Sequence record: NC_070962.1
Length of the DNA: 64,000 nucleotides
Direction: 5' to 3' (one strand)
Shown here one piece after another: positions 5,192-54,875 of the stretch. Every line of letters starts with the position of its first letter. The stretch's first letter is position 1. The notes beneath the pieces are model-generated. The model was not told the origin of the DNA and searched no databases. It was given only the letters and a program-made list of their open reading frames with translations. Position numbers and translations under genes: made by a program.

Positions 5192-5195
5192 CAAA

Positions 5196-5423
5196 ATGGA
5201 AAGTATCGAACAACATATTGAGAAGGATAAGGAGATCCTAGAAAATCCCACCATCTCACCACAACAACGTCGTCACATTGAATCCGAACTAGAAGAACTG
5301 GAAGCATATGCAGAAAATCACAAAGCAGACATTGAAGCAGGTGATCATCATGATCCAACTCCATTAGAGATGTATTGTGATGCAAATCCAGAAGCAGATG
5401 AATGCAGGATTTACGAGGATTGA
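5196..5423 (+). CDS. cp12: CP12 Calvin-cycle inhibitor (cyanophage type)
   Basis: C-terminal HDPTPLEMYCDANPEADECRIYED is the CP12 signature with its Cys pair. 75 aa, acidic. Confidence 0.92.
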   Translation: MESIEQHIEKDKEILENPTISPQQRRHIESELEELEAYAENHKADIEAGDHHDPTPLEMYCDANPEADECRIYED

Positions 5424-5430
5424 GTAAAAA

Positions 5431-8803: not shown

Positions 8804-9580
8804 ATGTCTTTATCATTTGACGATATAGCAATTCAACATCAACTTAATGTTGGTATGGGTGTTGTTCCATTCTTTGGTTTGGGACCTGCACGTGTTCGTG
8901 GTGCAGCATACATTGAAGGTCCACTAAATGTTGGCACACCCTTTGCAATTAATATGGGTGCTGTCAATATTGGTCCTCTTATTAATCCAGATTCACCACC
9001 ACCATTTATTCCTGGTGGATTCTGCTATGGACCACCAGCAAATCCATTTTCACTTGCAGTTTTAGGAAGTGTAGGAATTCTTGGTGATCTTAACATTGCG
9101 ACTAATGTAATTATTGGTGGTAATTTATTTGTTCAAGGATTGGTCCTTGGCAGTTGTGGTGGTCATTTGTTACAAATTAAAAAGAACTTTGACATTCCTC
9201 ACCCATCAAAGGAAGGTTGGAGACTGAGGCATACTTGTCCAGAAGCACCTTACAATGATGTATACATCCGAGGGAGAGTTACTAATCAAAAAGAGATCAA
9301 TCTTCCTGCATATTGGAAAGACTTTGTTGATGTAAGAAGCATCACAGTAAATCTAACTCCAGTTGGATCTCATCAAAACGTTATAGTAAAACGTATTGAT
9401 GAAAATAAAATTTATCTACAATCAAATGGTGGAATGCCAATCGATTGTTTCTATCACATCTATGCTGAACGCAAAGATGGTGAAAAACTAATTCCAGAAT
9501 ACCCAGGTCAATCACCAGCAGATTACCCAGGTGATAATAGTGGTTATTCTATTGCTGGATATAACTACGACGTTCGATAA
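8804..9580 (+). CDS. Virion structural protein, paralogue of 9592..10239
   Basis: Shares FDIxHP..RLRHxCxE..VYIRG..LPxYW..VD..SITVxLT..YxIxAxRxDGExLIxEY with the next gene. Confidence 0.55.
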   Translation: MSLSFDDIAIQHQLNVGMGVVPFFGLGPARVRGAAYIEGPLNVGTPFAINMGAVNIGPLINPDSPPPFIPGGFCYGPPANPFSLAVLGSVGILGDLNIATNVIIGGNLFVQGLVLGSCGGHLLQIKKNFDIPHPSKEGWRLRHTCPEAPYNDVYIRGRVTNQKEINLPAYWKDFVDVRSITVNLTPVGSHQNVIVKRIDENKIYLQSNGGMPIDCFYHIYAERKDGEKLIPEYPGQSPADYPGDNSGYSIAGYNYDVR

Positions 9581-9591
9581 GGAGATTTATT

Positions 9592-10239
9592 ATGTCAGAA
9601 TTTGTACCAGGTAATCATGACAGTCAAAATTGTGATGGACCAGTAACTGGTGTTCCTCATCCAAGTTTTGATTATATTTTAAGGTCAACTACTAATGATG
9701 ATGATGAATATAGTGAATGGAATCCATGTCCAAGATACTTACAAGTAAATGGAAAGTTTGATAACCTTCAGGTTACTGCTAATGTAACTGTTGCTGCTAA
9801 TGTAACTGCAGCAACATTTACTGGAGTTATCAACCAACAATCTTGGAAAGGATTTGATATTAAGCACCCCAATAAGGACAATCACCGTCTGAGACACATC
9901 TGCATGGAAGGACCAGAAGCAGGTGTTTATATTCGTGGCAGACTTACTGGAAATAATACAATTAAGTTGCCAGAATATTGGGATGGTCTTGTAGATCCAG
10001 AATCAATTACTGTTTCTCTTACGCAGATTGGATACTCTCAAGATCTTATTGTTGAAGGTATTGAATGGGGTAAGATTGTGAAGGTGAAGTCAGGTAATGG
10101 AACTTCAATTGATTGTTACTATACCATTCAAGCATCAAGAATTGATGGTGAGCCATTGATCGTGGAGTATGAGGGTGAGACACCAGCAGAGTACCCAGGC
10201 AGCAAGGACCAGTTCTCCATCTCTGGATTCGACTATTGA
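9592..10239 (+). CDS. Virion structural protein, paralogue of 8804..9580
   Basis: Same C-terminal domain as the preceding gene. Confidence 0.55.
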   Translation: MSEFVPGNHDSQNCDGPVTGVPHPSFDYILRSTTNDDDEYSEWNPCPRYLQVNGKFDNLQVTANVTVAANVTAATFTGVINQQSWKGFDIKHPNKDNHRLRHICMEGPEAGVYIRGRLTGNNTIKLPEYWDGLVDPESITVSLTQIGYSQDLIVEGIEWGKIVKVKSGNGTSIDCYYTIQASRIDGEPLIVEYEGETPAEYPGSKDQFSISGFDY

Positions 10240-10264
10240 CACGGGTCCCTGACCCTGCTATAAT
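10236..10264 (+). promoter_or_regulatory. Consensus sigma70-type promoter
   Basis: TTGACA (10236-10241), 17-nt spacer, TATAAT (10259-10264). The spacer contains a GGGTC-CCT-GACCC hairpin. Confidence 0.85.
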
Positions 10265-10287
10265 ACGTGGGTAAACAAGGGAACACC

Positions 10288-10476
10288 ATGGAAGAGTACG
10301 TTGATTCAGTCCTCATCGACATGAGCAAGAGGCAGTTCAAGTTGTTCTCCACTCAAGGTGACGAAAAAGTTGTTGATTGTGAGACCTATGATCAATTCAT
10401 GAGTGTCTTCAAGCTTGTTCGTGACCGAGTTGATGAGGAAATGATTTTTTATACCAAACCAAATGTAGCAGTATGA
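10288..10476 (+). CDS. Small hypothetical cyanophage protein
   Basis: ATG at 10288 after AAGGGAA, downstream of the sigma70 promoter. Stop overlaps the cpeT start. Confidence 0.7.
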   Translation: MEEYVDSVLIDMSKRQFKLFSTQGDEKVVDCETYDQFMSVFKLVRDRVDEEMIFYTKPNVAV

Positions 10477-10931
10477 TTGAAGAGTTTATCTCTAAACTGA
10501 CGGGAAAATATAATAACCTTAAGCAGGCACAATCAAGTCCCCGAGACCACTCTCACGTTCATATCCTTTGGACTAATCTTCGTGAGGGTGGTAGAATGAC
10601 CATCAAACAATGGTATGAACATGATGGAGAATCAAATCCTTATCGTGCTCGTTGCCACAAAGTTCTACAAAAAGATGATTACATCGTCGTAGAAAACTGG
10701 GGAACTGATTGGACTCATAGTCCTGCATTTGATATGAAGTTCACTCTTATAGATACCTTCTATAAAGGTGAATTGATTTATCCAGACCCAATCATTCGTG
10801 AAACAACTCTCAAAAGTTTCGTGGAGTTTGATGGGTACACCTATCGTAGTATGGATCAAGGATGGAAGGATGACAAACTTGAGTGGGGATCTTTGAGTTA
10901 TTATGAACTCCAAAAGGAAATTGGGTTTTAA
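10473..10931 (+). CDS. cpeT: CpeT/CpcT-like phycobilin lyase (T-type)
   Basis: N-terminal F..L.GKYNNLKQAQSSP...HVHI, KQWY...PYR and C-terminal YRSMDQGW...WGS pattern of cyanophage CpeT. Confidence 0.8.
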   Translation: MIEEFISKLTGKYNNLKQAQSSPRDHSHVHILWTNLREGGRMTIKQWYEHDGESNPYRARCHKVLQKDDYIVVENWGTDWTHSPAFDMKFTLIDTFYKGELIYPDPIIRETTLKSFVEFDGYTYRSMDQGWKDDKLEWGSLSYYELQKEIGF

Positions 10932-10993
10932 ATCCAAAAATCGGGCAAAAAAATTCCCCAAAAATTTTTCACGTAAAAGGTTTTTCAAAAAAT

Positions 10994-11158
10994 ATGCGAC
11001 CAGAAACAAGAAAGTCAATGGAGATGCTGTTTGAAGCAAAATGGAACTTGCCAAAAGCAGCAAAACATGCTAATCTTACTAACAAAGAGATGAAAATCAC
11101 TTTTAACGAATATTGTTCCTTTCATAAACCTACTTGGGAATTAAATGACAATACTTAA
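10994..11158 (+). CDS. 54-aa hypothetical protein (not in the ORF track)
   Basis: Hand translation: MRPETRKSMEMLFEAKWNLPKAAKHANLTNKEMKITFNEYCSFHKPTWELNDNT. Fills the gap between cpeT and the oxygenase. Confidence 0.65.
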   Translation: MRPETRKSMEMLFEAKWNLPKAAKHANLTNKEMKITFNEYCSFHKPTWELNDNT

Positions 11159-11702
11159 TTTTTATCATATTCCATCCGATATTACTAAAACAGTATGTGA
11201 TGAAATTATTAAACAGTATGATAATGAATTTGAGTATGAACCAGGTATCATAGGAGATAAGACTTTAGATTTAAAAAGAAGAAAATCTAAAGTAAGATGG
11301 ATTTATAGTGATAGTTGGATTTCTGGAATGTTAGCTCACTTTATACAAAGTGCTAATCATAATCATTTTAATCTAGATTTAACTGGATGGAGTGGAAAAA
11401 TACAATTTACATTGTATGATTCAGAAAATGATCATTATTACTGGCACATCGATACAAATGCAGATGATTTAAAAGATGATTTTGTAAGAAAACTAAGTAT
11501 TGTAATGTGCTTATCATCAAAAGATGACTATGAAGGTGGAGAATTTGAAATATATTATCCACACGGTCTAAAAGAAACTAAAAAACTAGATTATGGTGAT
11601 GTGGTGGTATTTCCATCAATAATACCTCATAGAGTTAGACCAATTAAATCTGGAAAAAGATATTCTTTGGTTGGATGGTATGGAGGACCACCGTTCAAAT
11701 AA
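11145..11702 (+). CDS. 2OG-Fe(II) oxygenase (prolyl-4-hydroxylase-like)
   Basis: YYWHID (HxD), RKLS, GGEF, PHRV and RYSLVGW motifs. Confidence 0.9.
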   Translation: MTILNFYHIPSDITKTVCDEIIKQYDNEFEYEPGIIGDKTLDLKRRKSKVRWIYSDSWISGMLAHFIQSANHNHFNLDLTGWSGKIQFTLYDSENDHYYWHIDTNADDLKDDFVRKLSIVMCLSSKDDYEGGEFEIYYPHGLKETKKLDYGDVVVFPSIIPHRVRPIKSGKRYSLVGWYGGPPFK

Positions 11703-11707
11703 CACAT

Positions 11708-11779
11708 GGGACTGTCGCCTAATGGTGAAGGCCCTCTGCTTATAACGGAGTGATCCGAGTTCAATTCTCGGCAGTCCTA
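11708..11779 (+). tRNA. tRNA-Ile (anticodon UAU)
   Basis: Acceptor stem GGGACTG/CAGTCCT, anticodon arm CTCTG-CTTATAA-CGGAG, T-loop GTTCAATTC. CCA is not fully encoded. Confidence 0.85.
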
Positions 11780-11783
11780 CCTT

Positions 11784-11868
11784 GCGAGTGTGGCGGAATC
11801 GGTAGACGCACCAGACTTAAAATCTGTTGGGCATTATGCCCGTGGGAGTTCAAGTCTCCCTACTCGCA
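11784..11868 (+). tRNA. tRNA-Leu (anticodon UAA)
   Basis: Acceptor stem GCGAGTG/TACTCGC, D-loop GGAATCGGTAGA, anticodon loop CTTAAAA, long variable arm GGGCATTATGCCC, T-loop GTTCAAGTC. Confidence 0.92.
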
Positions 11869-11883
11869 CTATAATTATATTCC

Positions 11884-11889
11884 TAAATA
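11884..11889 (+). promoter_or_regulatory. T4-like late promoter (TAAATA)
   Basis: TAAATA about 30 nt before the 1853-aa structural gene. Confidence 0.6.
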
Positions 11890-11917
11890 GACCTATAGGA
11901 ATTTAACGCTTAATAAG

Positions 11918-14900
11918 ATGGGTCTTAGTCGTCTGGATAATTTTCTAAAGAGCACCAAGGGTGAGATTCTTTATGTAGATCCCTCAAGTCTCGATTCTAC
12001 GGACAGTATCGAGAATAAAGGTAACTCTTTAGCAAGGCCATTTAAAACAATTCAAAGGGCACTGCTGGAAGCAGCACGTTTCTCCTATCAAGCAGGAGAA
12101 AATAATGATAGATTTGGTAAAACAACCATTCTACTCTATCCTGGTGAGCACGTAGTAGATAATAGACCAGGATGGATACCAATTCATGATCAAGTGGCAA
12201 ACACGTACAGACTTAGATCTGGTACTACTTCTGATGACTTTCCACCACTTGATGTCAATAGCAACTTTGACCTAGACAGTCCTAATAACGCATTATATAA
12301 ACTTAACAGTATTCATGGTGGTGTTATCATTCCTAGAGGTACATCACTAGTAGGTCTCGACCTTAGAAAAACCAAAATTATTCCTAAGTATGTTCCTAAT
12401 CCAGAAAACGACCAAATTGAAAGATCTGCTATCTTCCGTGTAACTGGTGCTTGTTACATGTGGCAGTTCTCCATCTTTGATGGTGATCAAACTGGAACTG
12501 TATATAAAGACTATACTAATAATTCTTTCGTTCCTAATTTCTCACACCATAAGCTAACAGTATTTGAATATGCTGATGGTGTAAATCCAGTATCTATTAA
12601 TGACGACTTCCTAGTCTATGATGATACAAATACCGATCTTGATATGTTCTATCAAAAGGTTGGTTTTGCATATGGTAAACCATCTGGAAGAGAAGTTTCT
12701 CCTGATTATCCTTCTGATAGCCTAGACATCGAACCAAAGGTTGATGAATATCGTATTGTTGGTTCTACTGGTGCTGAAGTAGGAATTACCAGTATTAAGG
12801 CAGGTGATGGAGCAATTTCTTCAACAGAAATTACAGTTACACTAGAGAATGAAGTTCCTGGTCTTGACGTAAATACCCCAATTCGTATTGAAGGTATTGC
12901 TGATGAGGGTTATGACGGTCAGTTTGCTGTATTTGAAGTTCTTTCAACTACAGAGATTAAGTATCAAGTTTCTGTTCCACCAACAAATCCACTACCAGCA
13001 ACAACTTCTGGTGCAACACTGAATATTTCCGTTGATACTGTTACATCTGCATCACCATATATCTTTAACATCTCTCTGAGGTCTGTTTATGGTATGTGTG
13101 GACTTCATGCTGATGGATCTAAGGCAACTGGATTCAAGTCCATGGTTCTTGCACAATATACTGGTATTGGACTCCAGAAAGACGATAATGCATTTGTAAA
13201 ATATAATTCTTCTACTGGATTATATGAAGGAACTCTAGCAGCAGGTAATGAAAATATTCATACCGACTCCAATGCTAGATTCAAACCAGAGTATGAGAAC
13301 CATCATATTAAGTGCAGCAACAATGCACTTTTACAGATCGTTTCGGTTTTCGCAATTGGTTTCAACAATCACTTCTTGCTAGAGTCTGGTGGTGACGCAT
13401 CTATCACCAACTCCAACTCTAACTTTGGTGCAAAAGCTCTTGTCTCTAGAGGTTTCAGACCAGATGCATTCCCAAGAGATGATATTGGTTATATCTCACA
13501 TTTTGTAACACCAAAAGAAATTGAATCTGTTGAAGGTGGTATTGAATTCTTAGGTATTGATGTAGGTGTTACTACTTCTGTTGGTATCGCAACAACTAGC
13601 AAACTTTTCCTATATGGAGAGGATAATTTAGACGTTCCACCAGCAACCGTAATTGATGGTTATCGTATTGGTTCTAAGAAAGATGAAGCACTAAAAGTTC
13701 TTCTTGCATCAGGTAATGAGATTGAGACATATCATTCTCAAGTTGTAATGCCTAGTACTGAAGGTACTGCAAATGAAAAAATATCTGAAAAAATTCATAA
13801 AGTTAAACAATCTAATGATATTAATGTAATTGTATCAAATACACTTACTCTTGAAGAAAATCACACATTCTTGAATGGTGAGACTATTAGGATTATTAGT
13901 GAAAATGGTGGTCTTCCTGATGGTATTACTGAGGATAAGATATACTACGCAATTACTACAGCAATTGCTCCCAATCCAGCACTCGGTGCAAATCAATTAA
14001 AAATTGCTGCAACTCTAAATGATGCTAACAACGATGTTCCAATTACTATCAATAATACTGGTGGTATCCTCAGTATTGTAAGTAGAGTATCTGATAAATC
14101 TGCTGGAGATCTTGGGCACCCAGTTCAGTGGGATGAAACACAGCAACAGTGGTACGTTAATGTTTCTACTGGAAGCACTGATGTAAGTATCTACAAGCAA
14201 TTGTGGATGAGAGGTGTTGCAGAACTAGGTGAAACGACACCAAGAACATTTGTTCTCAGAAAACCAACTGATAGAAATGTTGAGGGAAGTCTTTATAAAG
14301 TTCGTTATGTTCTACCAAAAGATTCTCCAACATTGGGTAGACCTCCAGTTGATGGATTTGTTATTCAAGAGTCCAATAATATAGATGGAACTAGCAATTC
14401 TGAGGTTGAAAAGTATTTAAGTTTTGACAGTCAAACTCTCTCAAACTCGACAGAGTTTAGAAACTTTAAATTTATTGCAGATGCCGAGTGGTCATCTGTT
14501 GATAGCAAAGCAACGATTAGAACAGAAATACCACACAATTTAAATGCTGGGGCACAGGTAGAAATTACCAATGTGTATAGTGGTTTTAATACTACAGGAA
14601 AAGATAATAATGGATTTAATGGGACATTTATTGTTGATAGTGTTGAAAATAGAAAAGAATTTAAGATTGGTATTGCAGTAAATCCTGGTGATTTTACAAG
14701 TGATACTTCTATTCGTAATCAAAATTTACCAAAACTTAAGAAAAAGAAGAACAGTGGAACATTCTTAGTATATAAGAGTGATGAGATACAACCATATGTT
14801 CAAAATGAACAAGATGGTGTATATCATTTAACTATTATTAACTCATCAAATACTCCCACTGTATCACCATTTACTGGTGTAAAACTATTACAACCTCTGG

Positions 14901-44123: not shown

Positions 44124-44288
44124 ATGGACCCTAATGACATTTCATTACAAACACCTTCAAAATCTTTTGAATATGAGAAAGTTTCAAGAGAAATTGATAA
44201 GATTGAAGATATTGAGGGTCTACGAACGATGCTTAAGTCATATGTAAAATTATATTTCAAACAACAAGAAACGATCAGAATGATCTGA
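44124..44288 (+). CDS. 54-aa NblA-like helix-loop-helix protein (not in the ORF track)
   Basis: Shine-Dalgarno AAGGAG. Hand translation MDPNDISLQTPSKSFEYEKVSREIDKIEDIEGLRTMLKSYVKLYFKQQETIRMI. The ORF itself is well supported; the NblA resemblance is judged by eye. Confidence 0.5.
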   Translation: MDPNDISLQTPSKSFEYEKVSREIDKIEDIEGLRTMLKSYVKLYFKQQETIRMI

Positions 44289-44291
44289 TAA

Positions 44292-44348
44292 GACCAGTTT
44301 GAGAACTGTCACAGGCACCTTGACTTTCGGGTCAGGGTGCCTTATATT
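44292..44348 (+). promoter_or_regulatory. Early promoter with upstream dyad motif and overlapping terminator-like hairpin
   Basis: GACCAGTT-n6-CTGTCAC, then TTGACT-17-TATATT. Hairpin GGCACCTTGAC-TTTCGG-GTCAGGGTGCC at 44314-44341. Confidence 0.7.
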
Positions 44349-45622: not shown

Positions 45623-45847
45623 ATGAAGTATACATATAGTAACTCATCACTGTTAGAACCTGATTTTCGCAATCAATATTGCTCAGATGATGGAAACTTT
45701 GTTGTGATTCCAATGGCAGGTAAGAAAGAAAAATATACTCTAATTGTTCAAGGAAACACAACTGGAAAAACCTATCGCAAATTTGACACAGCACTTAAAG
45801 AAGTGATAAAATTGCAGAATAGGTATCACAAAAAACTCAAAAAGTAA
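45623..45847 (+). CDS. Hypothetical protein
   Basis: Compact ORF between the helicase and the oxygenase cluster. Confidence 0.65.
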   Translation: MKYTYSNSSLLEPDFRNQYCSDDGNFVVIPMAGKKEKYTLIVQGNTTGKTYRKFDTALKEVIKLQNRYHKKLKK

Positions 45848-45852
45848 TTGGT

Positions 45853-46521
45853 ATGTCACATTTTCATCTTTATTCTGATCCACCTGAAGGAAACGTAGAG
45901 TATTTGATTCCAATGTTCTCTACTCCTCTTTTACATCTTAAAGTAGTAAATTGGGAAGAAAAAAAGGCAGAACTTCTCAAAATGTATGAAAATAGAAAAC
46001 AAGATCGATCCAGATTTAAAGTTGCAACTGGTAGTGAATTAAGTCTAGATGTTGAAACAGACTATCATCATAATCATGACACTGGAGAAACTTATGATGA
46101 AGACATCATGGATATTTTTCAGGAAGAACTAGAAACTCTTGCTGATACCTTCGAGTGTAGTGTTGATGTTTGTACCTCATGGTTTGAGAAAGCATCAAAA
46201 AGTAAGTTTCATCAGGTTCATAATCACGGATCACAAGGATTTAGTGCTGTATGTTTTGTTCAATTCGATGAAAAACATCACACACCAACAATTTTCCTTA
46301 ATCCAAATTTAGCAGATGTTGAAGTTTGTAATGTGATTCCACCAGGAATTAGAGAGGGATCACTTATCTTCTTCCCATCATATGTTTTACATTATACCGC
46401 ACCAAATGTAAGTGATGTTGATAGAATTATTCTATCATTTAATATCAATGCCGAGTATGAATCATTTACATTTGAGGAAGAAAGTCAGTTTGATTCCGAA
46501 TATGTAAACAACGATGTCTAA
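45853..46521 (+). CDS. Putative 2OG-Fe(II) oxygenase (HxH type)
   Basis: FHQVHNHG...LIFFPSYVLH..RIILSFN. Confidence 0.8.
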   Translation: MSHFHLYSDPPEGNVEYLIPMFSTPLLHLKVVNWEEKKAELLKMYENRKQDRSRFKVATGSELSLDVETDYHHNHDTGETYDEDIMDIFQEELETLADTFECSVDVCTSWFEKASKSKFHQVHNHGSQGFSAVCFVQFDEKHHTPTIFLNPNLADVEVCNVIPPGIREGSLIFFPSYVLHYTAPNVSDVDRIILSFNINAEYESFTFEEESQFDSEYVNNDV

Positions 46522-47077
46522 ATCATTTGTTCTTCGCAATTTCTTATTCGATCATGATGTAAAGCAATTAAATCAATGGACTCTCGATAATTGTCATCGA
46601 AAGATCTTTGAGGATGCTTGCATGGATCCTGACAATCCTGGAACAAGATTTACAACTCGGTTTCCAAATGAATCAGTTGCTCCTGATATAAATTATCCCA
46701 AATCTGCATTTGCAGTCAAGCAAAGAATTGTAGATTACTTTCATTTGAGACGATATAAAAATCCACCATCATACAGTCATGGCATTGTTAATGGTATAGG
46801 ATATGCTGGTGGAAGAATAGAAAATCATATTGATCCCACATACTATCCAAATACTAAAACTGTTCACTTCAATGCCATCACGCAGCAGGCATCTAGGGGT
46901 GGACATACTGTCATTGGTGGTGTAGAATATAATGATCTCAATCCTACAGATCTTCTAATTTACCAGGTATCTGAAATTCATCATGAAGTTACACCAACAG
47001 AAGGTAATATACCAAGAATACTGTGGGTGTTTGGTTTTTGTTTAGATGACATAAAAATAAAGGAGTTATTCTTATGA
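46514..47077 (+). CDS. Putative 2OG-Fe(II) oxygenase
   Basis: IENHID...GG...HHEVTP...RILWVFG. Confidence 0.78.
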   Translation: MSKSFVLRNFLFDHDVKQLNQWTLDNCHRKIFEDACMDPDNPGTRFTTRFPNESVAPDINYPKSAFAVKQRIVDYFHLRRYKNPPSYSHGIVNGIGYAGGRIENHIDPTYYPNTKTVHFNAITQQASRGGHTVIGGVEYNDLNPTDLLIYQVSEIHHEVTPTEGNIPRILWVFGFCLDDIKIKELFL

Positions 47078-47805
47078 TAGACCTGAGTAAAGATCCAACA
47101 TTGTTTGAGACTAATGATTTCTCAAACATGAATATCATTGAGTTTGTTGATGGTGATAGGGTATCTAATCTTTATTGGATGGATAATTTCTATAAAAGAC
47201 CTGATGATGTATATAACTATTTGCTTTCTATTGAACCACCATTATGGAAAGTAGGACCAGACTGGGAACTTGGTAGAGGAACACTCAACACCAAGTATTT
47301 TGAAGATCGTAGACATATGATGGAACATCCTGGCATATGCTCACTGTATGATAAGGTTTCTGATATTTGTGGTCAAGAACCATTGGACGATGAAATTGTT
47401 ACTAATTTCACAAGATTTTCCAGAGTAAGAGAGAACCCATACAAAACTCATTACTGGTGGCCTCATCATGATGGAGGATATAATGGTATTTGTTATCTCT
47501 CTAAGAAGGATGAAGTTGGCACAAACTTATATAAACCACTGATCACTGATGATCCTGAGATACTACCTTTGGATGAGAATGGTGGTGTGAGAGATGAACA
47601 TGCTATTCCGTGGACACCTAAAAACCTATGGGAAATTGTGGTGAGATTTAGATCGAAGTTTAATCGATTTGTAATGTTTGAAGGTTCATATTATTATCAC
47701 AGTATGGATCTAACTGGTAAAAATTATTTTGCAGATCATTTTAATGATGCAGAATTTAGAATCAATCAAGTATTTTTCTTCAAAAATCCAAGGGCACCAA
47801 GATAA
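47074..47805 (+). CDS. Putative 2OG-Fe(II) oxygenase-like protein
   Basis: WPHHD..GICYL..GT.LY...FNRFVMF...YHS...RINQVFF. Confidence 0.7.
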   Translation: MIDLSKDPTLFETNDFSNMNIIEFVDGDRVSNLYWMDNFYKRPDDVYNYLLSIEPPLWKVGPDWELGRGTLNTKYFEDRRHMMEHPGICSLYDKVSDICGQEPLDDEIVTNFTRFSRVRENPYKTHYWWPHHDGGYNGICYLSKKDEVGTNLYKPLITDDPEILPLDENGGVRDEHAIPWTPKNLWEIVVRFRSKFNRFVMFEGSYYYHSMDLTGKNYFADHFNDAEFRINQVFFFKNPRAPR

Positions 47806-48467
47806 TGACTGAACATAGATTTAGACCAGAGATAAGTCCAAATGATGATAATTTTGTTGCATATGAAGTTTCTTCAAGGGATCGATTAGATTTATTTGTA
47901 ACACCATTTTATGACTATAAACTGGGATTAAATAATCAAGAAATTGTAGATGAATGTTTTAATCTAAAAGAAAAGTATCCAAATGGAGTTAAAAAATCCA
48001 ATTTTGGTGATGGTTGGCAAAGTCAAGTATATGAATTAGCAACAATTAGAAGAGGAATGATCCCAGCAATTCAAAATCTTGCTAGGAACGTGATTGATCT
48101 CACAAACGATATGCTTGAGGATTGTCATTCTGGTAAATCAGTGAATGATAATGAAATTGGTTGGTGGATTAACATTAACAAAGGGATGGGATATAATGTA
48201 TATCATACACATCCTGGTTGTTCTGTAATTGGACTATATTATCCTATGGTTCCAGAAAATATGGGTGATCAAGAAGGACTTCTTACACTACTGAGATCTG
48301 ATCCTTCAAGTCATAATGAAGCATTTGCTGATATTGAAGGGCATTGTGAGTGGGTTATTAGACCAGAAGTTGGAAGACTTTATCTGATGCCTTCTACTAT
48401 TGCTCATTATGTAACTCCTCATTTTAGTGATCAGGAGAGAATATCCATTGCATTTAATATTGGATAA
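47805..48467 (+). CDS. Putative 2OG-Fe(II) oxygenase (HxH type)
   Basis: YNVYHTHPG...PSTIAHYVTP...RISIAFN. Confidence 0.8.
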   Translation: MTEHRFRPEISPNDDNFVAYEVSSRDRLDLFVTPFYDYKLGLNNQEIVDECFNLKEKYPNGVKKSNFGDGWQSQVYELATIRRGMIPAIQNLARNVIDLTNDMLEDCHSGKSVNDNEIGWWININKGMGYNVYHTHPGCSVIGLYYPMVPENMGDQEGLLTLLRSDPSSHNEAFADIEGHCEWVIRPEVGRLYLMPSTIAHYVTPHFSDQERISIAFNIG

Positions 48468-48470
48468 ATA
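48464..48470 (+). promoter_or_regulatory. Late promoter ATAAATA
   Basis: Directly upstream of the collar-domain genes, marking them as late (structural). Confidence 0.7.
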
Positions 48471-48504
48471 ATACACGTTATCTGTTGTTAGTAATTGGTA
48501 TAAT

Positions 48505-49041
48505 ATGTCTATTTTACAAACGAGTGGTATACAATTTGGTTCTGACAATACCATTCTAAACTCTAAGTATGGTATTATTCCTCAAAATAGTAAAGCAGTA
48601 TTTTATCAAGCAAATGCTCCTACTGGATGGACAAAAGTAACTACACATAATAATAAAGCACTTAGAGTTGTATCTGGAACTGGTGGTGGATATGGTTCTG
48701 GTGGAACTGCTGGTCCTGGTGGACAACCATTCTCGACAATTTTTCCCACCAGTGTTCGTCCAATTAGTGGAACTGTAACTGCTGCTGGTACTGTAAATGC
48801 GACAACATTGACAATTCAACAAATTCCTGGACACACACATAATGCAGGTTCTCAAGTTAATGTCAGTCCTGGATCTCCTGGTATTGGTGGACGTGCTGTA
48901 AATGCTCAAGCACCAGCAACATCACCAACTGGAGGTGGAGGTTCTCATACTCACCCATTTGGTGGAAGTGCATCACCATATAGTGGAACTATTGACATGA
49001 GAGTTCAATATATTGATGTCATCATTTGTAACTTCACTTGA
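48505..49041 (+). CDS. Short tail-collar/needle-type fibre protein
   Basis: FYQANAPTGWTK..HNNKALRVV collar motif, two HTH motifs 35 aa apart, C-terminal RVQYIDVIIC. Confidence 0.75.
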   Translation: MSILQTSGIQFGSDNTILNSKYGIIPQNSKAVFYQANAPTGWTKVTTHNNKALRVVSGTGGGYGSGGTAGPGGQPFSTIFPTSVRPISGTVTAAGTVNATTLTIQQIPGHTHNAGSQVNVSPGSPGIGGRAVNAQAPATSPTGGGGSHTHPFGGSASPYSGTIDMRVQYIDVIICNFT

Positions 49042-49051
49042 GGTATAATGT

Positions 49052-50317
49052 ATGTCAATTTTAAGAGCAGACGGACTTAGATTTGGTAATGGAACTGAAT
49101 TAACAAGTTTTTATGGAATTGTTCCACAATCTTCCACGATGGTGTTTTATCAAGCATCAGCACCAACTGGGTGGACTAAATCTACAACACATGATAATAA
49201 AGCGCTTAGAGTTGTAGATGGAACTGGTGCAGGATCTGGTGGTTTAATTTCCTTCACAGATATATTCAATGATTCTACAGGTGCAGAAGCAGATCTTTCA
49301 GCAACACTTTCAGGTTCTGTAGGTGGTCATACTTTAACGGAAGCAGAGATTCCTGCACATACTCATAACACTGGAAGTAATCCTAATTCATATAGATCTT
49401 CTGCTGGTTCTTCACCATTCAGAACCGATAACAGACAACCACGTGGATATAATATCAGAGCAATAACAAGAACTGTTCAAAACAATAGGGTTATTGTTAA
49501 TTTTAGACAACCAGTTAATGTAAGACAACCTCGTAACTATAGGCAACCAAGAAGACAGAGAGTTCCACTCAGACAGAGACAACCTAGGAACTTTAGGGTT
49601 AGGTATCCTACACGTTCTAGAGCACCATTTAACTTCCGTGCTCCTGTTCCTTTCCGTGTTCCATTAAGATCTAGAGCACCATTTAACTTCCGTGCTGATG
49701 TAGGAAGAAGTAGAAGACCAATTCCTTTCTCTTTCCGTGCATCTATTAGAAATAATGATAGATTCCCAAGAAGAAGAGGTGGAAGACGTAGGAGAAACGA
49801 TAGAGAACCAAGAAGAGCAGATAGAAGACAACCAAGAAACTCTGGTTGGAGACAAAGAAGACAACTTAGACAACCTAGATCTGCTAGACAGAGAAGGTCA
49901 TTCCGTCAACCTCGTAACTTCAGACAACCTAGAGCAGCAAGACAGAGGAGATCATTCAGGGTAAGACAACCAAGAACATTTAGAGTGAGATATTCATTCA
50001 GACAGAGAAATTCTTATCGTGTGAATATTCCGTTCAGAGCAGTAGTTCCACAGAGAAATCCTGCATCTTATAGACAACCAAGATCATATCGTGTACCACA
50101 AAGATACCCACAAACTAGCAGTGTGAGAGTATCGCAGAGAGTTTTAACTCCTGGTGGTACAATCAGAGCAAATAATACTCAAGCACCAGCAACATCACCA
50201 AGTGGTGGTGGTCAATCACATAATCATCCATTTACTGGATCTCCAATATCATGGGTTGCTTCATTGTCACCATTGAGAGTACAATACATCGACGTGATTC
50301 TTTGCAGTTTGGACTGA
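49052..50317 (+). CDS. Tail-collar/needle-type fibre protein with a ~240-aa Arg-rich insertion
   Basis: N- and C-termini are colinear with 48505..49041 (FYQASAPTGWTK; HTH at aa 103-105; HNH at aa 390-392; RVQYIDVILC). The interior is RQPR-type repeats. Confidence 0.75.
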   Translation: MSILRADGLRFGNGTELTSFYGIVPQSSTMVFYQASAPTGWTKSTTHDNKALRVVDGTGAGSGGLISFTDIFNDSTGAEADLSATLSGSVGGHTLTEAEIPAHTHNTGSNPNSYRSSAGSSPFRTDNRQPRGYNIRAITRTVQNNRVIVNFRQPVNVRQPRNYRQPRRQRVPLRQRQPRNFRVRYPTRSRAPFNFRAPVPFRVPLRSRAPFNFRADVGRSRRPIPFSFRASIRNNDRFPRRRGGRRRRNDREPRRADRRQPRNSGWRQRRQLRQPRSARQRRSFRQPRNFRQPRAARQRRSFRVRQPRTFRVRYSFRQRNSYRVNIPFRAVVPQRNPASYRQPRSYRVPQRYPQTSSVRVSQRVLTPGGTIRANNTQAPATSPSGGGQSHNHPFTGSPISWVASLSPLRVQYIDVILCSLD

Positions 50318-50320
50318 TCA

Positions 50321-50334
50321 TGCTATAATAAATA
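50321..50334 (+). promoter_or_regulatory. Overlapping extended -10 (TGcTATAAT) and late (ATAAATA) promoter
   Basis: Sequence TGCTATAATAAATA immediately after the Arg-rich gene and before 50354. Confidence 0.55.
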
Positions 50335-50353
50335 ATACACTGAATTTCATCTT

Positions 50354-50740
50354 ATGACTAAATCATCTGGCAAGTGGTGTCCACTTATTAAAAAAGATTG
50401 TGTTGAACATAAGTGTGCTTGGTACACACATATCGCAGGAGTAGATCCTAACACTGGAAATGCAGTAGATCATTGGTCTTGTGCAGTACAATGGATGCCA
50501 ATGTTAATGATTGAAAATAGTCAACAACAACGTCAAACTGGTTCTGCTGTTGAGTCTTTCCGTAATGAAATGGTGAAAGCAAATGACAGCAATCAGCAAA
50601 TGTTAGATGCTGTTGGTAACATGTATCTTGATATGTGTGAAGCACAAGGTGTTAATGTTTCCGAATATATTGAACAAATCGAAGGCATAGATAATACAGA
50701 AGAAAACTTACTACCAGAGTCCAACGAGGAGCAACAATGA
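50354..50740 (+). CDS. Cys-rich accessory protein of the collar-fibre cassette
   Basis: WCPLIKKDC...KCAW...WSCA (four Cys), followed by a helical and acidic tail. Confidence 0.7.
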   Translation: MTKSSGKWCPLIKKDCVEHKCAWYTHIAGVDPNTGNAVDHWSCAVQWMPMLMIENSQQQRQTGSAVESFRNEMVKANDSNQQMLDAVGNMYLDMCEAQGVNVSEYIEQIEGIDNTEENLLPESNEEQQ

Positions 50741-52074
50741 GAATTTCTATTATTCCAGAAGATAAGAAAATTATCGTAGATGGTAAGACTGTTGATCTTG
50801 AGGATGATGCACCTTGGGATTTTGATGATGAACCTATTCATGCAATTCAGTGGAGAGATGGTAGAGGTGAATTAGAATATGAGGATGTTCCTGGTGAAGA
50901 TCCTTTACCGAATAAGATTTTTGGTGATGATGAATTTGATACTATTGTTCAACCATACTTAGATTATTTTAATAGTTTCCTCACAGTCTATGAGCAAAGA
51001 CAACTTGCTGCTGCATTAGCAGAAGAAGAAAATCTTGCTGCTCAGATTGAAGAATTAAATCTTGATAAACTAGAAAAAGAAGCACAGTTGGTTATCATTG
51101 ATGATCTTCAGAGACAAAATAAAGAACTTCGTGATGAAAGAGAAGAACTGTATAATGAAAAATCTAGACTTGAACAAGCAAAAGTTTTTGATGAACAAAC
51201 TTCTTTGATGGAACTTCAAAGAGAACAGGCAGCAAGAGAATCAGAAAGAGCAGGACTTGAAGCACAAAAAGCAGAAGAATTTTTTGAAAAGAAATCTTTA
51301 GAACTTGCTAAGAAGTATGATGAACTCTTCCATGACTTTGAGAAAGAGAAGGAAGCATTTATTGAAGAGAGGAAGCAGTATCAAGAACTGCTTCAGATGG
51401 AACGTGACAAGATGGAACGTGAACTTGAAGAAAGTGAAAAAGGCATTCTTCTAGAGGATAAAGAAAGAGCACAAAAAGAGGAGATGCTAGAGAAAGTCAG
51501 GTTGCTTGAAGAAGAGCAACTTGAAATTACAAAGGCAGAACTTGAAATGCAAAAAGAAGGTCTTCATGTTCAATGGCAAAATGCTGAATGGGAACTTGAA
51601 GAGATTCGACGTGAAAGAGATAAAATTCGCATGGAGTTTGAGGAAGAGAAAAAAAGATTCGATAAACAAGTTGATCAAGAACTTGATGTTATCATGAGAT
51701 CTCATGAAGATGTTCTTGCTAAGTTAGATAATGAACAGTATTATGATGAACTTGATGATGCTCTAGAGAAAGAATTTGACAAAGCAGAGAAAGAATATAG
51801 AGATAGTCAGAGAGAAAAACTTAAGGCATCTCAGGCAAATACTTTTGCTTCTGAGTTGAGTGATCTTTCTAAAGAGAGTGCCGATAGAGAAGAAATTGAG
51901 AAAGGTCAAAATTATTCTATTGATGACATTCTAACTCTCATGGATGAAATTGATCCTGAGAAATTATACACAACTCTTACATCAGAAGAAAGGAAAGATA
52001 ATGAACTTCCTGTAGATAAAGCAGTTAAATGGTTCTCTGCCCTTAAAGATGTTCTAGATAAAAATAACAACTAA
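50737..52074 (+). CDS. Fibre-assembly-chaperone-like N-terminal domain fused to a long acidic coiled coil
   Basis: N-terminal MRISIIPEDK.I.VDG...IHAIQW.DG.GELEY. From about aa 85 it is a heptad-like Glu-rich helix. Hand count 130 D/E versus 68 K/R. Confidence 0.6.
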   Translation: MRISIIPEDKKIIVDGKTVDLEDDAPWDFDDEPIHAIQWRDGRGELEYEDVPGEDPLPNKIFGDDEFDTIVQPYLDYFNSFLTVYEQRQLAAALAEEENLAAQIEELNLDKLEKEAQLVIIDDLQRQNKELRDEREELYNEKSRLEQAKVFDEQTSLMELQREQAARESERAGLEAQKAEEFFEKKSLELAKKYDELFHDFEKEKEAFIEERKQYQELLQMERDKMERELEESEKGILLEDKERAQKEEMLEKVRLLEEEQLEITKAELEMQKEGLHVQWQNAEWELEEIRRERDKIRMEFEEEKKRFDKQVDQELDVIMRSHEDVLAKLDNEQYYDELDDALEKEFDKAEKEYRDSQREKLKASQANTFASELSDLSKESADREEIEKGQNYSIDDILTLMDEIDPEKLYTTLTSEERKDNELPVDKAVKWFSALKDVLDKNNN

Positions 52075-52080
52075 TATGGT

Positions 52081-53442
52081 ATGAAAGATGAATTGATGAA
52101 GAACAACTATCTGGTTGTTCCTGGTTTTATTGATGCTGATCATGCCAAAAGATTAGAGGATGAGTTTTTTGTAACAGATGCAAAGTTTAATTTTAATGGT
52201 GATGAACAAGCACCAAACTCTGCATCTGTTTGGAATTATCTTCCAGCACTAGAACTTCTCACTAACAAGACATCTCATGTGAGTGAACTTGTTGGTGAAA
52301 CTGTTTTGCCAACGTACACTTATTCCAGAATCTATCGCAATGGAAGTGTTCTTGCAAAACATACAGATCGTCCAGCATGTGAAGTTTCTATGACTCTACA
52401 TTTGGGTGGTGATGTACCTTGGGCAATTTGGATTGAAACACCAGAGGGTGAAAAAAGATGTGTATCTTTGAATCCTGGTGATGCTATGCTATACTTGGGA
52501 TGTGTTGCTCCACATTGGAGAGATAGATTTACTGGTGAACACTATACACAGTTCTTTTTACACTATGTGAGAAGCAGAGGAATGTATGGTGCTGCATTTT
52601 TTGATCAAGAACGTGATGTAATTGAAGACCACGAAAGTTTATTAGAGGAGTATGATGACATGAGAAATAGACTAGAACATTCCAATCCAAGAGCAATTCT
52701 ACCTAAAAAGTATAGAGAAAAACAGCAAGGTAGTATTGACATTGTAAAAGTTGATAACAATGATGAAGGGTTTGTCGATTTTGATAATGTTGTAATTGCT
52801 AATTCAAAGTATGAAAAGTTTCTGAAGAAGAAAGATACACCAGAGATTGTAAATTCCAGTGCCAATAAATTGAGTGTAAAGAAACTGGAAGATTTTATCT
52901 GGCATGGTGAAGAGTTTATTGATCCTGAATTTTGTGATAAACTTCTAGAAGAATATGCACCAACAAATTATTGGGAACCAACACTAACTGGAAGTGGTCA
53001 TGATCCAGATGCAAGACGTTGTGAGATGATTCCTATTTCTGATCAAGGAATTATAGAAGAAAATAATACAGAAGAGAGAAAGGAATTAGATGAATATCTT
53101 TTTAATGTCGTGAAAGATATTATTGAAGATTATCAAAAAATGCACCCTGAGTTTGAACTAGAAGTTCAAGAAGATAGTGGATATGAGTTACTAAAATATG
53201 AAGTTGGTGACTTTTATATTCAGCACAGTGATTCTTTCAAGGAGCAACCTAGAGCATTGACTGTTATTATGTCAATGAATGATGGTTATGAAGGTGGTGA
53301 AGTTGCACTCTTTAATCGTGAGTTAGTATACAAACTTGGTGCTGGTGATATTCTAGTGTTCCCATCAAACTTCATGTATCCACATGAAATTATGCCAGTG
53401 ACTTCTGGAACTAGATATTCTATCATCACCTGGATTGTATGA
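52081..53442 (+). CDS. Tandem two-domain 2OG-Fe(II) oxygenase
   Basis: Domain 1: LAKHTDRPACE..PHWR. Domain 2: YIQHSD...GG...PHEIMPV..RYSIITW. Confidence 0.88.
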   Translation: MKDELMKNNYLVVPGFIDADHAKRLEDEFFVTDAKFNFNGDEQAPNSASVWNYLPALELLTNKTSHVSELVGETVLPTYTYSRIYRNGSVLAKHTDRPACEVSMTLHLGGDVPWAIWIETPEGEKRCVSLNPGDAMLYLGCVAPHWRDRFTGEHYTQFFLHYVRSRGMYGAAFFDQERDVIEDHESLLEEYDDMRNRLEHSNPRAILPKKYREKQQGSIDIVKVDNNDEGFVDFDNVVIANSKYEKFLKKKDTPEIVNSSANKLSVKKLEDFIWHGEEFIDPEFCDKLLEEYAPTNYWEPTLTGSGHDPDARRCEMIPISDQGIIEENNTEERKELDEYLFNVVKDIIEDYQKMHPEFELEVQEDSGYELLKYEVGDFYIQHSDSFKEQPRALTVIMSMNDGYEGGEVALFNRELVYKLGAGDILVFPSNFMYPHEIMPVTSGTRYSIITWIV

Positions 53443-54092
53443 AACATAATGATTTTATTGGTGTTTATCCAGATTCACTAGATAAACAAACTTGTGATTA
53501 TATTATTCAATATTTTGAAGATAATTATAAACACCCTGATGATCCAAATTGTAAAATAAAAGCAGGATGTGGTTCACATGAAACTGAGAGAGGTCATCTT
53601 ACCCGTCATGATTATCAATGGTATCTAAATTTAGATGATCCTGCTGCATCTCTTATTGCACAAGTTGTTGATCATTGTTGGAGGAAATATGTTGAAAGAT
53701 TCTGGGTTGCTGATTACATAAGCACATCTTTTGAGGAAGTAAAACTTCAGAAAACACCACCAAGAGGTGGATTTCATGATTGGCATTGTGAAATCAATGA
53801 TTTAGGTGTTGTTGACAGATGTGTTGCTTGGATGTTATATTTGAATGACATTCCTGAAGGTGAAGGTGAAACTGAGTTCCTTTGGCAAGGTCTTAGAGTA
53901 CAACCAAAAGCAGGAACGTTGTTAATTTGGCCCGCATTTTTTACTCATACTCATCGAGGAAATCCTGTTTATTCATGTGATAAGTATATTGCAACAGGAT
54001 GGGGTTTATATGAACCAAATGAAGATGTCGCACTTGTTGATGTTTTTAATTGGGATGATGACAAAAAAATCTTTACTGGAAGAAAAAACTAA
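53439..54092 (+). CDS. 2OG-Fe(II) oxygenase (HxE variant)
   Basis: FHDWHCE...MLYLND..GETEF...THTHRG..KYIATGW. Confidence 0.88.
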   Translation: MKHNDFIGVYPDSLDKQTCDYIIQYFEDNYKHPDDPNCKIKAGCGSHETERGHLTRHDYQWYLNLDDPAASLIAQVVDHCWRKYVERFWVADYISTSFEEVKLQKTPPRGGFHDWHCEINDLGVVDRCVAWMLYLNDIPEGEGETEFLWQGLRVQPKAGTLLIWPAFFTHTHRGNPVYSCDKYIATGWGLYEPNEDVALVDVFNWDDDKKIFTGRKN

Positions 54093-54307
54093 TGGCACTA
54101 TCAGATCAAGTTAAAGACGAATTAGACTCTGCTTCAACACATCTTCGTGAAGCACTAGCATTTGCTGCAAGAAATGAAAAACCTTTTGTTATTAAAGCAT
54201 TGGGTGAAATGGTTCATGCTTTGGATCAACTATCATCCGCAGATGAGTTCATGGATACTATGCAAGAATTGATGAAGGAGCAAGAAGATGGACTATCAGA
54301 TTTTTAA
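54092..54307 (+). CDS. Small helical hypothetical protein
   Basis: Overlap-coupled to its neighbours on both sides. Confidence 0.7.
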   Translation: MALSDQVKDELDSASTHLREALAFAARNEKPFVIKALGEMVHALDQLSSADEFMDTMQELMKEQEDGLSDF

Positions 54308-54875
54308 TGATCCATTTCCTTATGTTATCATAAATGATACATTTAATTCGGGTGAACTTGAGTTAATTTGGAGAGAAATTGATTTTTTAGAACCAAAACT
54401 AAGAGAACCTGAAGGTTTTTTTGCTGCGGCAAATGAAACAGGGGAATATATTACAAATTCCAAAGGATTGTCCTTAGATGATACCTATGGAAATCGTGAT
54501 TGTTCTGATATTTTAACTATAACCAGATCAATTTTCTTTCATAATACTGAATTGTACGATGATTTGAGTAAATCTAGTGACTATTGGGTAACATGGACAA
54601 AATCAAATTCGGATTATACTAAACTTAGGAAGTATTCACCTGGACAAGGATATAATCCACATTCAGATACTTGGGTAAATGTGTTAATTTCAACCACATT
54701 GTATAAAGAAGAAGGAAGTGGTGGTGATTTATATTTCCCTTATCATGATCTGACAATAGAAACTAAAAACAATCAAACTGTTATTTTTCCTGGATGGGTA
54801 GAACATGCTGTACTAGATGTTGAAGATAATGACAGATATGCTGTAACGATATTTGTACACTGTGCCAGTTCTTGA
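54288..54875 (+). CDS. 2OG-Fe(II) oxygenase
   Basis: YNPHSD...GGDL...FPGWVEHAV...RYAVT. Confidence 0.85.
   Translation: MDYQIFNDPFPYVIINDTFNSGELELIWREIDFLEPKLREPEGFFAAANETGEYITNSKGLSLDDTYGNRDCSDILTITRSIFFHNTELYDDLSKSSDYWVTWTKSNSDYTKLRKYSPGQGYNPHSDTWVNVLISTTLYKEEGSGGDLYFPYHDLTIETKNNQTVIFPGWVEHAVLDVEDNDRYAVTIFVHCASS

Follow-up and report, generated by a model that had tools for sequence, protein, structure and literature searches.

The locus analyzed here raises the question of why genes for two fibre-tip proteins, one of them extremely rich in arginine, are enclosed on both sides by genes for 2-oxoglutarate (2OG)-Fe(II) oxygenases and followed by a gene for a strongly acidic protein. It occupies positions 45853-54875 of a stretch of 64,000 nucleotides (nt) from sequence record NC_070962.1 (hereafter the window), which is part of the genome of Synechococcus phage S-SCSM1 (MK867354.2, 228,827 bp, Kyanoviridae); the locus corresponds with 100% identity to positions 210680-219702 of that record and comprises the genes SSCSM1_240-251. 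Genes are referred to by their start positions in the window or by short names (ox1-ox7, colS, colL, Cys4 and s71); all are encoded on the + strand, and none of them is broken. The original prediction, made from the sequence of the window, held that these genes form one system, in which a cationic virion appendage is escorted by an acidic chaperone and possibly modified by the surrounding oxygenases. All open reading frames (ORFs) that it named are present at the positions it gave and match SSCSM1_240-251, and its count of four oxygenase genes upstream and three, with four domains, downstream of the fibre genes is right according to Pfam and conserved motifs. In PMC9602691, seven of the same genes are labeled as members of the "2OG-Fe(II) oxygenase superfamily", three as hypothetical proteins and one each as "tail fiber protein (virion protein)" and "short tail fiber protein"; the cassette is not treated there as one unit. 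Our analysis identifies the region as a clade-specific elaboration of a widespread receptor-binding-fibre module. Its best overall explanation, for which we regard the chances as evenly balanced, is that colL encodes a fibre-tip needle with an Arg-rich insert, that the genes behind it encode assembly partners including a shielding rod, and that the oxygenases hydroxylate the insert.

The two collar-type genes are paralogues. The short one, colS (48505-49041, SSCSM1_244), encodes a 178-residue fibre-tip protein with two HxH motifs, while colL (49052-50317, SSCSM1_245) encodes a protein of 421 residues. In a global alignment, about 110 N-terminal and about 55 C-terminal residues of the two proteins are aligned, and the roughly 250 extra residues of the colL product are located between its HxH motifs H103/H105 and H390/H392; the likeness is closest in the N-terminal 57 residues, the HxH motifs and the C-terminal strand. 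Both motifs are invariant, at H103/H105 and H390/H392 in 35 long members and at H110/H112 and H148/H150 in 45 short members. A single-sequence search of the PDB with the collar protein gave a weak match. A profile of the 45 short collar proteins matched 9qgo (E=1.3e-10) and 9nxk (E=3.9e-7), spanning both HxH motifs. These structures are the Pvc13 fibre of the Photorhabdus contractile injection system (PVC) and the fibre of Pseudomonas phage Pa223, both of which were solved as trimers, and the C-terminal region of Pvc13 has been described as homologous to the host-binding domains of phage short tail fibres. Furthermore, HHpred matches of SSCSM1_244/245 to T4 gp10, gp12 and gp37 were reported in PMC9602691; T4 proteins were absent from our PDB profile search of the short collar family at E<=1. 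The Pfam family Collar (PF07484) was not matched, neither product matched any Pfam family at E<=0.1, PHROG and NCBIfam returned no Collar match, and the homologues carry no precomputed Pfam domain. The alignment of both HxH motifs with solved trimeric tail fibres supports the assignment of the two products as homologues of trimeric fibre tips, as had been predicted from the paired motifs, and the colL product may likewise adopt the geometry of a trimeric needle.

The number of collar paralogues in the cassette varies, since some Arg-insert relatives possess two short collar genes before the long one together with an extra copy of ox1 (as at positions 8912-9991 of locus L006). In the related large cyanophage S-SCSM2R (positions 8995-12459 of locus L002), three short collar genes in a row are followed by a wcaG RNA element and a gene for a 530-residue 2OG oxygenase; the Cys4 homologue of this phage is sited elsewhere in its genome, away from the three collar genes.

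A late-promoter-like motif, ATAAATA, lies 5' of colS (48464-48470), and a second copy lies 5' of the Cys4 gene (50328-50334). The window contains 10 copies of this motif, all on the + strand, compared to about 21 expected by chance on both strands; this strand bias and scarcity fit a reserved late-promoter element. Of 30 related loci, 27 have the motif no more than 90 nt ahead of the short collar gene, and the late promoter that the original prediction placed before the fibre genes is retained here as a late-promoter-like motif. It also precedes the Cys4 gene in 15 of 27 related loci and is found before no oxygenase gene. Sigma-70-like sites are not enriched in the region (48 found versus 43 expected), and one of them, TTGACA-18-TAAAAT with an extended TG, is located 5' of ox1 (45783-45812, a consensus match only). 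Since ox1 has this match and the oxygenase genes lack the late motif, the upstream enzymes could precede the fibre in time. From 50354 to 54875, neighboring genes overlap or are separated by a gap of 6 nt, and we take these tight junctions as a sign of probable co-transcription.

The segment that distinguishes the colL product is unusual in its composition and is conserved as a family. The whole protein contains 81 Arg and 2 Lys, resulting in a net charge of +65 and an isoelectric point (pI) of 12. A search of 5.8 billion protein clusters revealed about 59 full-length relatives with 33-91% identity and 411-516 residues, below which only short collar proteins were matched, and these by their N-terminus only. 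Scans of viral and metagenome contigs, together with protein look-ups, yielded 30 distinct proteins of the long-collar architecture, in which the 275-364 residues between the HxH motifs include 44-89 Arg, 0-11 Lys and 18-50 Pro. The commonest distance from one Pro to another in the insert is six residues, corresponding to a hexapeptide repeat. At the DNA level, Tandem Repeats Finder reported only two short arrays and almost no tandem repetition; therefore, the hexapeptide repeat is old and does not reflect a recent expansion. The Arg-rich insert is under purifying selection; in comparisons with close relatives whose dS is not saturated, its dN/dS (the ratio of nonsynonymous to synonymous substitution rates) is 0.2-0.35 and does not exceed that of the collar parts. 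A noncoding or artefactual low-complexity stretch is ruled out by the roughly 59 homologues and by these dN/dS values. When the insert alone was compared with 1.84 billion representative proteins, only seven matches were obtained, all of them from its own family, and among 50,697 deposited phage genomes it was found in S-SCSM1 only. Most of the Arg codons counted in the insert are AGA (54 of 75), and an ORF for an acidic protein of 75 residues inside colL (49737-49964, + strand, other frame) was rejected as a gene, being a by-product of these AGA-rich codons.

The likely shape of this segment was approached with an AlphaFold2 model of the monomer, based on an alignment of 35 sequences. In this model, residues 127-198 (49430-49645; predicted local distance difference test, pLDDT, 63-81) and residues 291-362 (49922-50137; pLDDT 61-81) are two paired strands of 72 residues each, with block means of 61-81 that are mostly between 70 and 81, and the intervening residues 199-290 (49646-49921) are placed with low confidence as the tip region. 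The insert is thus predicted to be one very long out-and-back beta-hairpin, which, if its strands are extended, would measure about 24 nm in its confident part and about 40 nm in total. Support that is independent of the model comes from the sequences, as 26 of 30 members have their densest Arg window at 0.46-0.52 of the insert length; in S-SCSM1, this center reads RRRGGRRRR (residues 240-248, 49769-49795).

The gene behind colL encodes the Cys4 protein (50354-50740, SSCSM1_246), which comprises 128 residues with four invariant cysteines (C9, C16, C21 and C43) in a nearly invariant core and belongs to a family of more than 4,700 clusters. It matched nothing in Pfam, PHROG or NCBIfam, a PDB profile search gave nothing significant, and its AlphaFold2 model is of low confidence (mean pLDDT 52). 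Its genomic position is more telling. Among loci retrieved with the proteins of the window and with hidden Markov models (HMMs) built from them, 107 of 121 distinct ones have a Cys4 homologue that starts at most 150 nt 3' of the last collar gene, over fibre lengths from 127 to 1302 residues. Examples are found at positions 5485-5796 of locus L003 and 6001-6324 of locus L090 (phage P-SSM2). Cyanomyoviruses, a Roseobacter podovirus and other phages have a Cys4 gene directly 3' of their collar-type fibre genes. The Cys4 protein looks like an undescribed general partner of this class of fibre tips.

The ORF after Cys4 is likewise conserved in position. In S-SCSM1, it encodes the acidic protein (50737-52074, SSCSM1_247), whose 445 residues include 130 Asp and Glu and 68 Lys and Arg (net charge -62, pI 4.4). 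Its N-domain (residues 1-95, 50737-51021) is shared, over about 90 residues, by the ORF that follows Cys4 in 83 of 101 loci. An HMM of this domain matched 121 ORFs, among them gp41 of the Roseobacter podovirus CRP-361 (E=7e-11) and PSSM2_030 (E=5e-4), both of which end in PF16778, the tail-assembly-chaperone domain of Pfam. PF16778 itself was not matched in the S-SCSM1 protein, nor was any other family in Pfam, PHROG or NCBIfam; its C-domain is unrelated to profiles of the PF16778-bearing homologues (hhalign probability 0.3%), and a PDB profile search with the N-domain family gave nothing significant. The expectation that the fibre genes are followed by their chaperones was borne out to the extent that the shared N-domain and the conserved position support an assembly-partner-like role for the genes after the fibre.

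Many phages without an Arg insert likewise encode Cys4, the acidic protein's N-domain and the two-domain oxygenase ox5 behind their collar-type genes. Where cyanomyoviruses have two short, neutral collar proteins, the genes for these are followed by those for Cys4, the acidic protein, an ox5-like oxygenase and an s71-like protein, in this order. These comparisons outline a generic module of one or two collar tips, Cys4 and a protein with the shared N-domain and a variable acidic tail, to which cyanomyoviruses add an oxygenase resembling prolyl 4-hydroxylase (P4H) and PiuC as well as a small helical protein.

Within the Arg-insert clade, the third gene of this module is elongated. The acidic protein comprises 423-502 residues, its negative charge is evenly spread over a nearly Pro- and Gly-free stretch rich in Glu, Lys and Leu (residues 74-389 in S-SCSM1, 50956-51903), which as a helix would form a rod of about 47 nm, and the C-domain (residues about 371-445, 51847-52071) is found in Arg-insert loci only. 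Across 24 distinct Arg-insert loci, the charge of the colL-type protein correlates with that of the acidic protein (r=-0.83) and their lengths correlate with each other (r=+0.92). Independent contrasts were calculated on two neighbor-joining trees, with signs given as contrasts agreeing/disagreeing. For insert versus acidic-protein charge, r0 was -0.69 on tree 1 and -0.58 on tree 2 (signs 12/7 on both), and for the lengths of the insert protein and the acidic protein it was +0.77 and +0.78 (11/4 and 10/4). The controls were near zero, with +0.03 and -0.03 (9/9 on both) for insert versus ox4 charge, and -0.09 and -0.10 (7/8 and 5/9) for the lengths of the insert protein and ox5. The co-variation of insert and acidic extension, by which the original prediction could be judged, is thus kept after phylogenetic correction within this clade, and it lends moderate support to a physical relation between the acidic rod and the hairpin.

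The oxygenase genes form two groups around this core. Upstream are ox1 (45853-46521, SSCSM1_240; PF13759/TIGR02466 type, Pfam E=6e-11, phrog_81), ox2 (46514-47077, SSCSM1_241), ox3 (47074-47805, SSCSM1_242; phrog_1644) and ox4 (47805-48467, SSCSM1_243; PF13759/TIGR02466 type, Pfam E=5e-15, TIGR02466 E=2e-15). Downstream are ox5 (52081-53442, SSCSM1_248), with an N-domain (52093-52614) and a P4H/PiuC-like PF13640 C-domain (52870-53436), ox6 (53439-54092, SSCSM1_249; PF13640, Pfam E=4e-10) and ox7 (54288-54875, SSCSM1_251; PF13640, Pfam E=8e-9). Between the latter two, s71 (54092-54307, SSCSM1_250; phrog_1179) encodes a small acidic helical protein, the conserved end of the generic module. The Pfam threshold for 2OG-Fe(II) oxygenases was exceeded by ox1, ox4, the C-terminal domain of ox5, ox6 and ox7. 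The ox3 product is a probable, DUF6445-like 2OG oxygenase with a weak match to PF20043 below the Pfam cut-off, and ox2, for which no Pfam match was obtained, is a probable one based on its conserved residues and its annotation in GenBank and PMC9602691.

The pattern HxD/H...H...R is at least 95% conserved in all eight oxygenase domains (13-66 homologues), two of which have HxH for HxD. The conserved residues are H120/H123/H125, H180 and R191 across 30 homologues of ox1, H105-x-D107, H157 and R168 across 25 homologues of ox2, H131-x-D133 and H209 in ox3, H134/H136, H201 and R212 in ox4, both HxD...H triads across 66 homologues of ox5, and H125-x-D127 and H173 in ox7, a gene restricted to the S-SCSM1-like subclade. 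In RefSeq and PHROG, ox3 is labeled "minor coat protein" and the N-domain of ox5 (52081-52614) "ferrochelatase"; both names look like propagated mislabels of proteins with a 2OG-oxygenase fold.

The association of these genes with the insert is pronounced. In the 4 kb upstream of the collar genes, each of the 19 Arg-insert loci compared has three to five oxygenase genes. Of 44 insert-less loci, 40 have none there, three have one and a single locus has two. Downstream, Arg-insert loci have 2-3 oxygenase genes versus 0-1 in insert-less loci (with a single exception of 2), and ox6 is present in 14 of 15 Arg-insert loci versus 1 of 48 others. Furthermore, the order ox3-ox4-short collar-long collar-Cys4-acidic protein-ox5-ox6-s71 is found in every Arg-insert locus with enough flanking sequence, even where the long collar proteins are only 31-35% identical and a flanking helicase gene has moved to the other side. 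Hydroxylation of the fibre by the oxygenases of the cassette is plausible on these grounds; in the literature searched, we found no report of phage fibre hydroxylation.

Based on these data, we propose the following model. The second collar paralogue would have gained an Arg-rich, Pro-containing hexapeptide-repeat segment between its HxH motifs, which most likely leaves the trimeric collar as an out-and-back beta-hairpin needle of tens of nanometers, with its highest Arg density at the far end. The protein would be made late, via the promoter that it shares with the virion protein colS, and since its N-terminal docking region is the same as that of colS, a role as minor or alternative fibre tip is probable. 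The Cys4 and acidic proteins would act as assembly partners. In the Arg clade, the acidic protein would have grown into a helical rod of about 315 residues and acquired a new C-domain, and since the length and charge of the rod track the insert, the rod is likely aligned with the nascent polycationic hairpin and shields it while it folds. The five to eight flanking oxygenases most likely hydroxylate Pro and/or Arg of the insert, analogous to the P4H-like gene of P-SSM2 (see below), and the finished needle would contact an anionic structure of the host surface.

Several results weigh against this model, beginning with its structural part. The AlphaFold2 monomer model of the colL product has a mean pLDDT of 54, with low confidence in the collar and tip parts, and Foldseek searches with the hairpin and Cys4 models returned nothing at E<=0.001, with template modeling (TM) scores <0.25. 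The top nonsignificant matches of the hairpin model, the phi29 tail axis and the lysenin pore, are explained by the fact that long hairpins alone are alike.

The role of the acidic protein is affected as well. Its positional homologues in insert-less loci (145-350 residues) carry net charges of -25 to -76 next to near-neutral collar proteins. The third gene was therefore acidic before the polycation arose or is so independently of it, and an origin of this acidity as a match to the polycation is ruled out by the insert-less loci. On this point, the original prediction of a dedicated polycation escort is not supported, and its "charge-matched escort" is backed in part, by the co-variation of length and charge within the Arg clade. 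Moreover, in the raw data, insert charge also tracks the charge of ox5 (-0.76) and of Cys4 (-0.80), which is a warning of lineage effects; the sign test for the charge contrasts is weak (12 versus 7), and the co-variation signal comes from few deep contrasts and crude trees.

Further points concern the oxygenases. According to PMC9602691, S-SCSM1 has 24 2OG oxygenase genes, 17 of which are located outside the cassette, and in the published view, such enzymes of cyanophages reprogramme the metabolism of the host. No oxygenase of the cassette was found close to an enzyme with known substrate in Pfam, PDB and NCBIfam searches; the ox5 C-domain matched PKHD/PiuC-type hydroxylases and 4iw3 weakly (E=1e-3 to 6e-3), with NCBIfam matches below the cut-offs. 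Proteins similar to ox3 and ox4 (30-40% identity) were found in 37 and 168 phage records without the insert, respectively, and ox5 follows the chaperone gene, beside neutral short collars, in 36 of 48 insert-less loci with enough flank, which weakens the idea of a dedicated link. In addition, all Arg-insert loci form one clade, so that the association of the oxygenases may be a single historical event, and the gain of multiple oxygenases with the Arg insert was probably one evolutionary event.

These observations would suit an explanation in which the fibre is as described and the oxygenases are unrelated auxiliary genes, acting on host metabolites, the 2-oxoglutarate balance or other proteins, and are neighbors of the fibre genes by inherited synteny in one lineage; the possible use of an early sigma-70-like promoter by ox1-ox4, which lack the late motif, points in the same direction. 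We consider this the strongest competitor and a substantial possibility, less probable than the model proposed above. What speaks against it is the invariance of the gene order from ox3 to ox6 despite the divergence of the fibres and the rearranged flanks, the gapless packing of ox5-ox7 behind the chaperone genes, and the P-SSM2 locus, in which a P4H-like gene is likewise located behind a collagen-repeat fibre gene. An occurrence of the oxygenases at this locus regardless of the cassette, which would have spoken against a common system, thus applies to ox5, which is present without the insert, but not to the upstream group and ox6, which track it.

A second set of points concerns the virion. 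In PMC9602691, 45 virion proteins were detected by mass spectrometry after tryptic digestion, and the GenBank virion flags agree with the examples named there. The flag is assigned to colS; it is absent from colL, Cys4, the acidic protein and all oxygenases, and thus the long collar protein is not among the 45 virion proteins although its short paralogue is. The numbers of in-silico tryptic peptides of 7-30 residues are similar (6 for colL and 5 for colS); therefore, poor digestibility alone does not explain this absence. However, 4 of the 6 usable colL peptides contain Pro, and a standard search would be expected to miss these four if the Pro were hydroxylated. We regard the missing virion flag as weak evidence of low copy number, absence or modification. 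The elongated cationic virion appendage of the original prediction is consequently left with evidence on both sides, as the predicted hairpin and the Arg-densest midpoint agree with it and the virion proteome does not. S-SCSM1 has been reported to infect both Synechococcus and Prochlorococcus, a host range that would be in line with one docking site for either of two tips.

The absence from the virion proteome could also mean that the Arg-rich protein is no virion appendage at all, but an intracellular binder of polyanions (nucleic acid, polyphosphate or acidic host proteins) or an assembly-only factor, in which the collar scaffold is re-used for trimerization. An R8-like center is typical of nucleic-acid-binding arginine-rich motifs, and the colL product combines such a center with extreme Arg content and almost no Lys; the acidic partner could then serve as an inhibitor or mimic. 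On the other hand, the protein has a docking-type N-terminus, both HxH motifs and the C-terminal strand in common with a proven virion protein, its gene is located behind a conserved late motif in a string of structural genes, and its regular, conserved hexapeptide/Pro pattern and predicted paired hairpin do not resemble a disordered tail. Together with the possible masking of tryptic peptides by modified Pro, these features render the intracellular role unlikely in our view. Finally, a homotrimer of the colL product would carry a net charge of about +195 and would presumably need counter-ions or a partner for stability, a further difficulty for the needle; mixed trimers of short and long collars, with one or two Arg hairpins per tip and the acidic rod (about 47 nm, similar to the roughly 40 nm of the hairpin under the assumed geometry) staying in the virion as a structural counter-strand, would lessen it and would suit paralogues so alike in their N-terminal 57 residues, HxH motifs and C-terminal strand, but we consider them highly improbable, given that the acidic protein has no virion flag and that relatives with two short collars and a long one are equally compatible with separate homotrimers.

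Comparison with known systems further delimits what is new in the needle model. In the T4 gp12 and gp37 tips, as proposed for S-SCSM1, the chain runs out of a trimeric collar behind one metal-binding HxH and comes back to another, and the fibre genes are followed by genes for non-virion helpers, gp38 and gp57A in T4. T4 gp57A is a small acidic helical protein. However, the out-and-back segment of S-SCSM1 is an Arg/Pro hexapeptide repeat of 250-340 residues with only two HxH motifs, whereas that of T4 is a His-rich needle, and the S-SCSM1 helpers are the Cys4 protein and a protein of 445 residues with a rod, for which no T4 or other named helper was matched in Pfam, PHROG, NCBIfam or PDB. The fibres 9qgo and 9nxk, matched by the collar profile across both HxH motifs, differ in having short segments between these motifs, no Arg-rich insert and no reported oxygenase neighbors. 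Proteins of the Tfa/PF16778 type share the position after the fibre gene with the acidic protein, and their PF16778-bearing members share its N-domain; the S-SCSM1 protein differs by the lack of PF16778, by its unrelated C-domain and by a long acidic helical rod in its place.

The closest parallel in gene content is found in P-SSM2, where PSSM2_028-032 (4315-7699 of locus L090) encode a fibre with collagen repeats (PF01391), Cys4, a chaperone with PF16778, PiuC and a small protein. The gene order is the same, and Cys4, the N-domain of the chaperone and the P4H-like PF13640 oxygenase are homologous. In contrast to S-SCSM1, the repeat is Gly-X-Y, there is one oxygenase and not seven, and the chaperone is short and carries PF16778. 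In P-SSM2, a collagen-like fibre and a prolyl-hydroxylase-like gene are thus naturally paired. The nearest functional precedent is the prolyl 4-hydroxylase of Chlorella virus PBCV-1 with its Pro-rich repeat substrates (Eriksson et al. 1999, as cited in PMC9301287), a 2OG oxygenase encoded by the virus whose target is Pro within short basic repeats of proteins that the virus also encodes. It is the single enzyme of a eukaryotic virus with no fibre/chaperone cassette, and we liken it to S-SCSM1 by function; the same article (PMC9301287) describes viral P4H genes as cryptic in their role. Fibre-plus-chaperone modules and viral prolyl hydroxylases are therefore known, while the literature searched describes neither the insert with its Arg-rich hairpin nor the lengthened acidic partner that co-varies with it, nor the conserved neighborhood of multiple oxygenases.

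With respect to other features, Rfam and tRNA scans of the cassette gave no match. Elsewhere in the window, two tRNA genes, Ile (anticodon TAT) and Leu (anticodon TAA), are located at 11708-11869, and a small nblA-like gene annotated as phycobilisome degradation protein is located at 44124-44342. After the latter, a terminator-like hairpin with a strong 13-bp stem (44313-44342) is the only convincing terminator near the cassette.

The conserved oxygenase neighborhood suggests that cyanophage enzymes may modify a virion protein, and the cassette provides a specific, conserved candidate substrate for cyanophage 2OG-Fe(II) oxygenases. It also presents a new fibre-tip design, a predicted Arg-rich hairpin found only in one oceanic and estuarine phage clade. 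The very widespread pair of Cys4 and N-domain proteins, which goes with collar-type fibres in myoviruses and podoviruses and lacks a family assignment, bears on the folding of receptor-binding proteins across many phages. In its most far-reaching form, the model describes a multi-enzyme hydroxylation system for one virion protein, in which five to eight 2OG oxygenases would decorate a poly-Arg/Pro needle with a length- and charge-matched acidic rod as assembly escort; we put this forward tentatively, as something somewhat less probable than the auxiliary-gene explanation. If true, it would provide a new class of modified, polycationic receptor-binding appendage, and the 2OG oxygenases that are abundant but unexplained in marine cyanophages would have a first concrete substrate.

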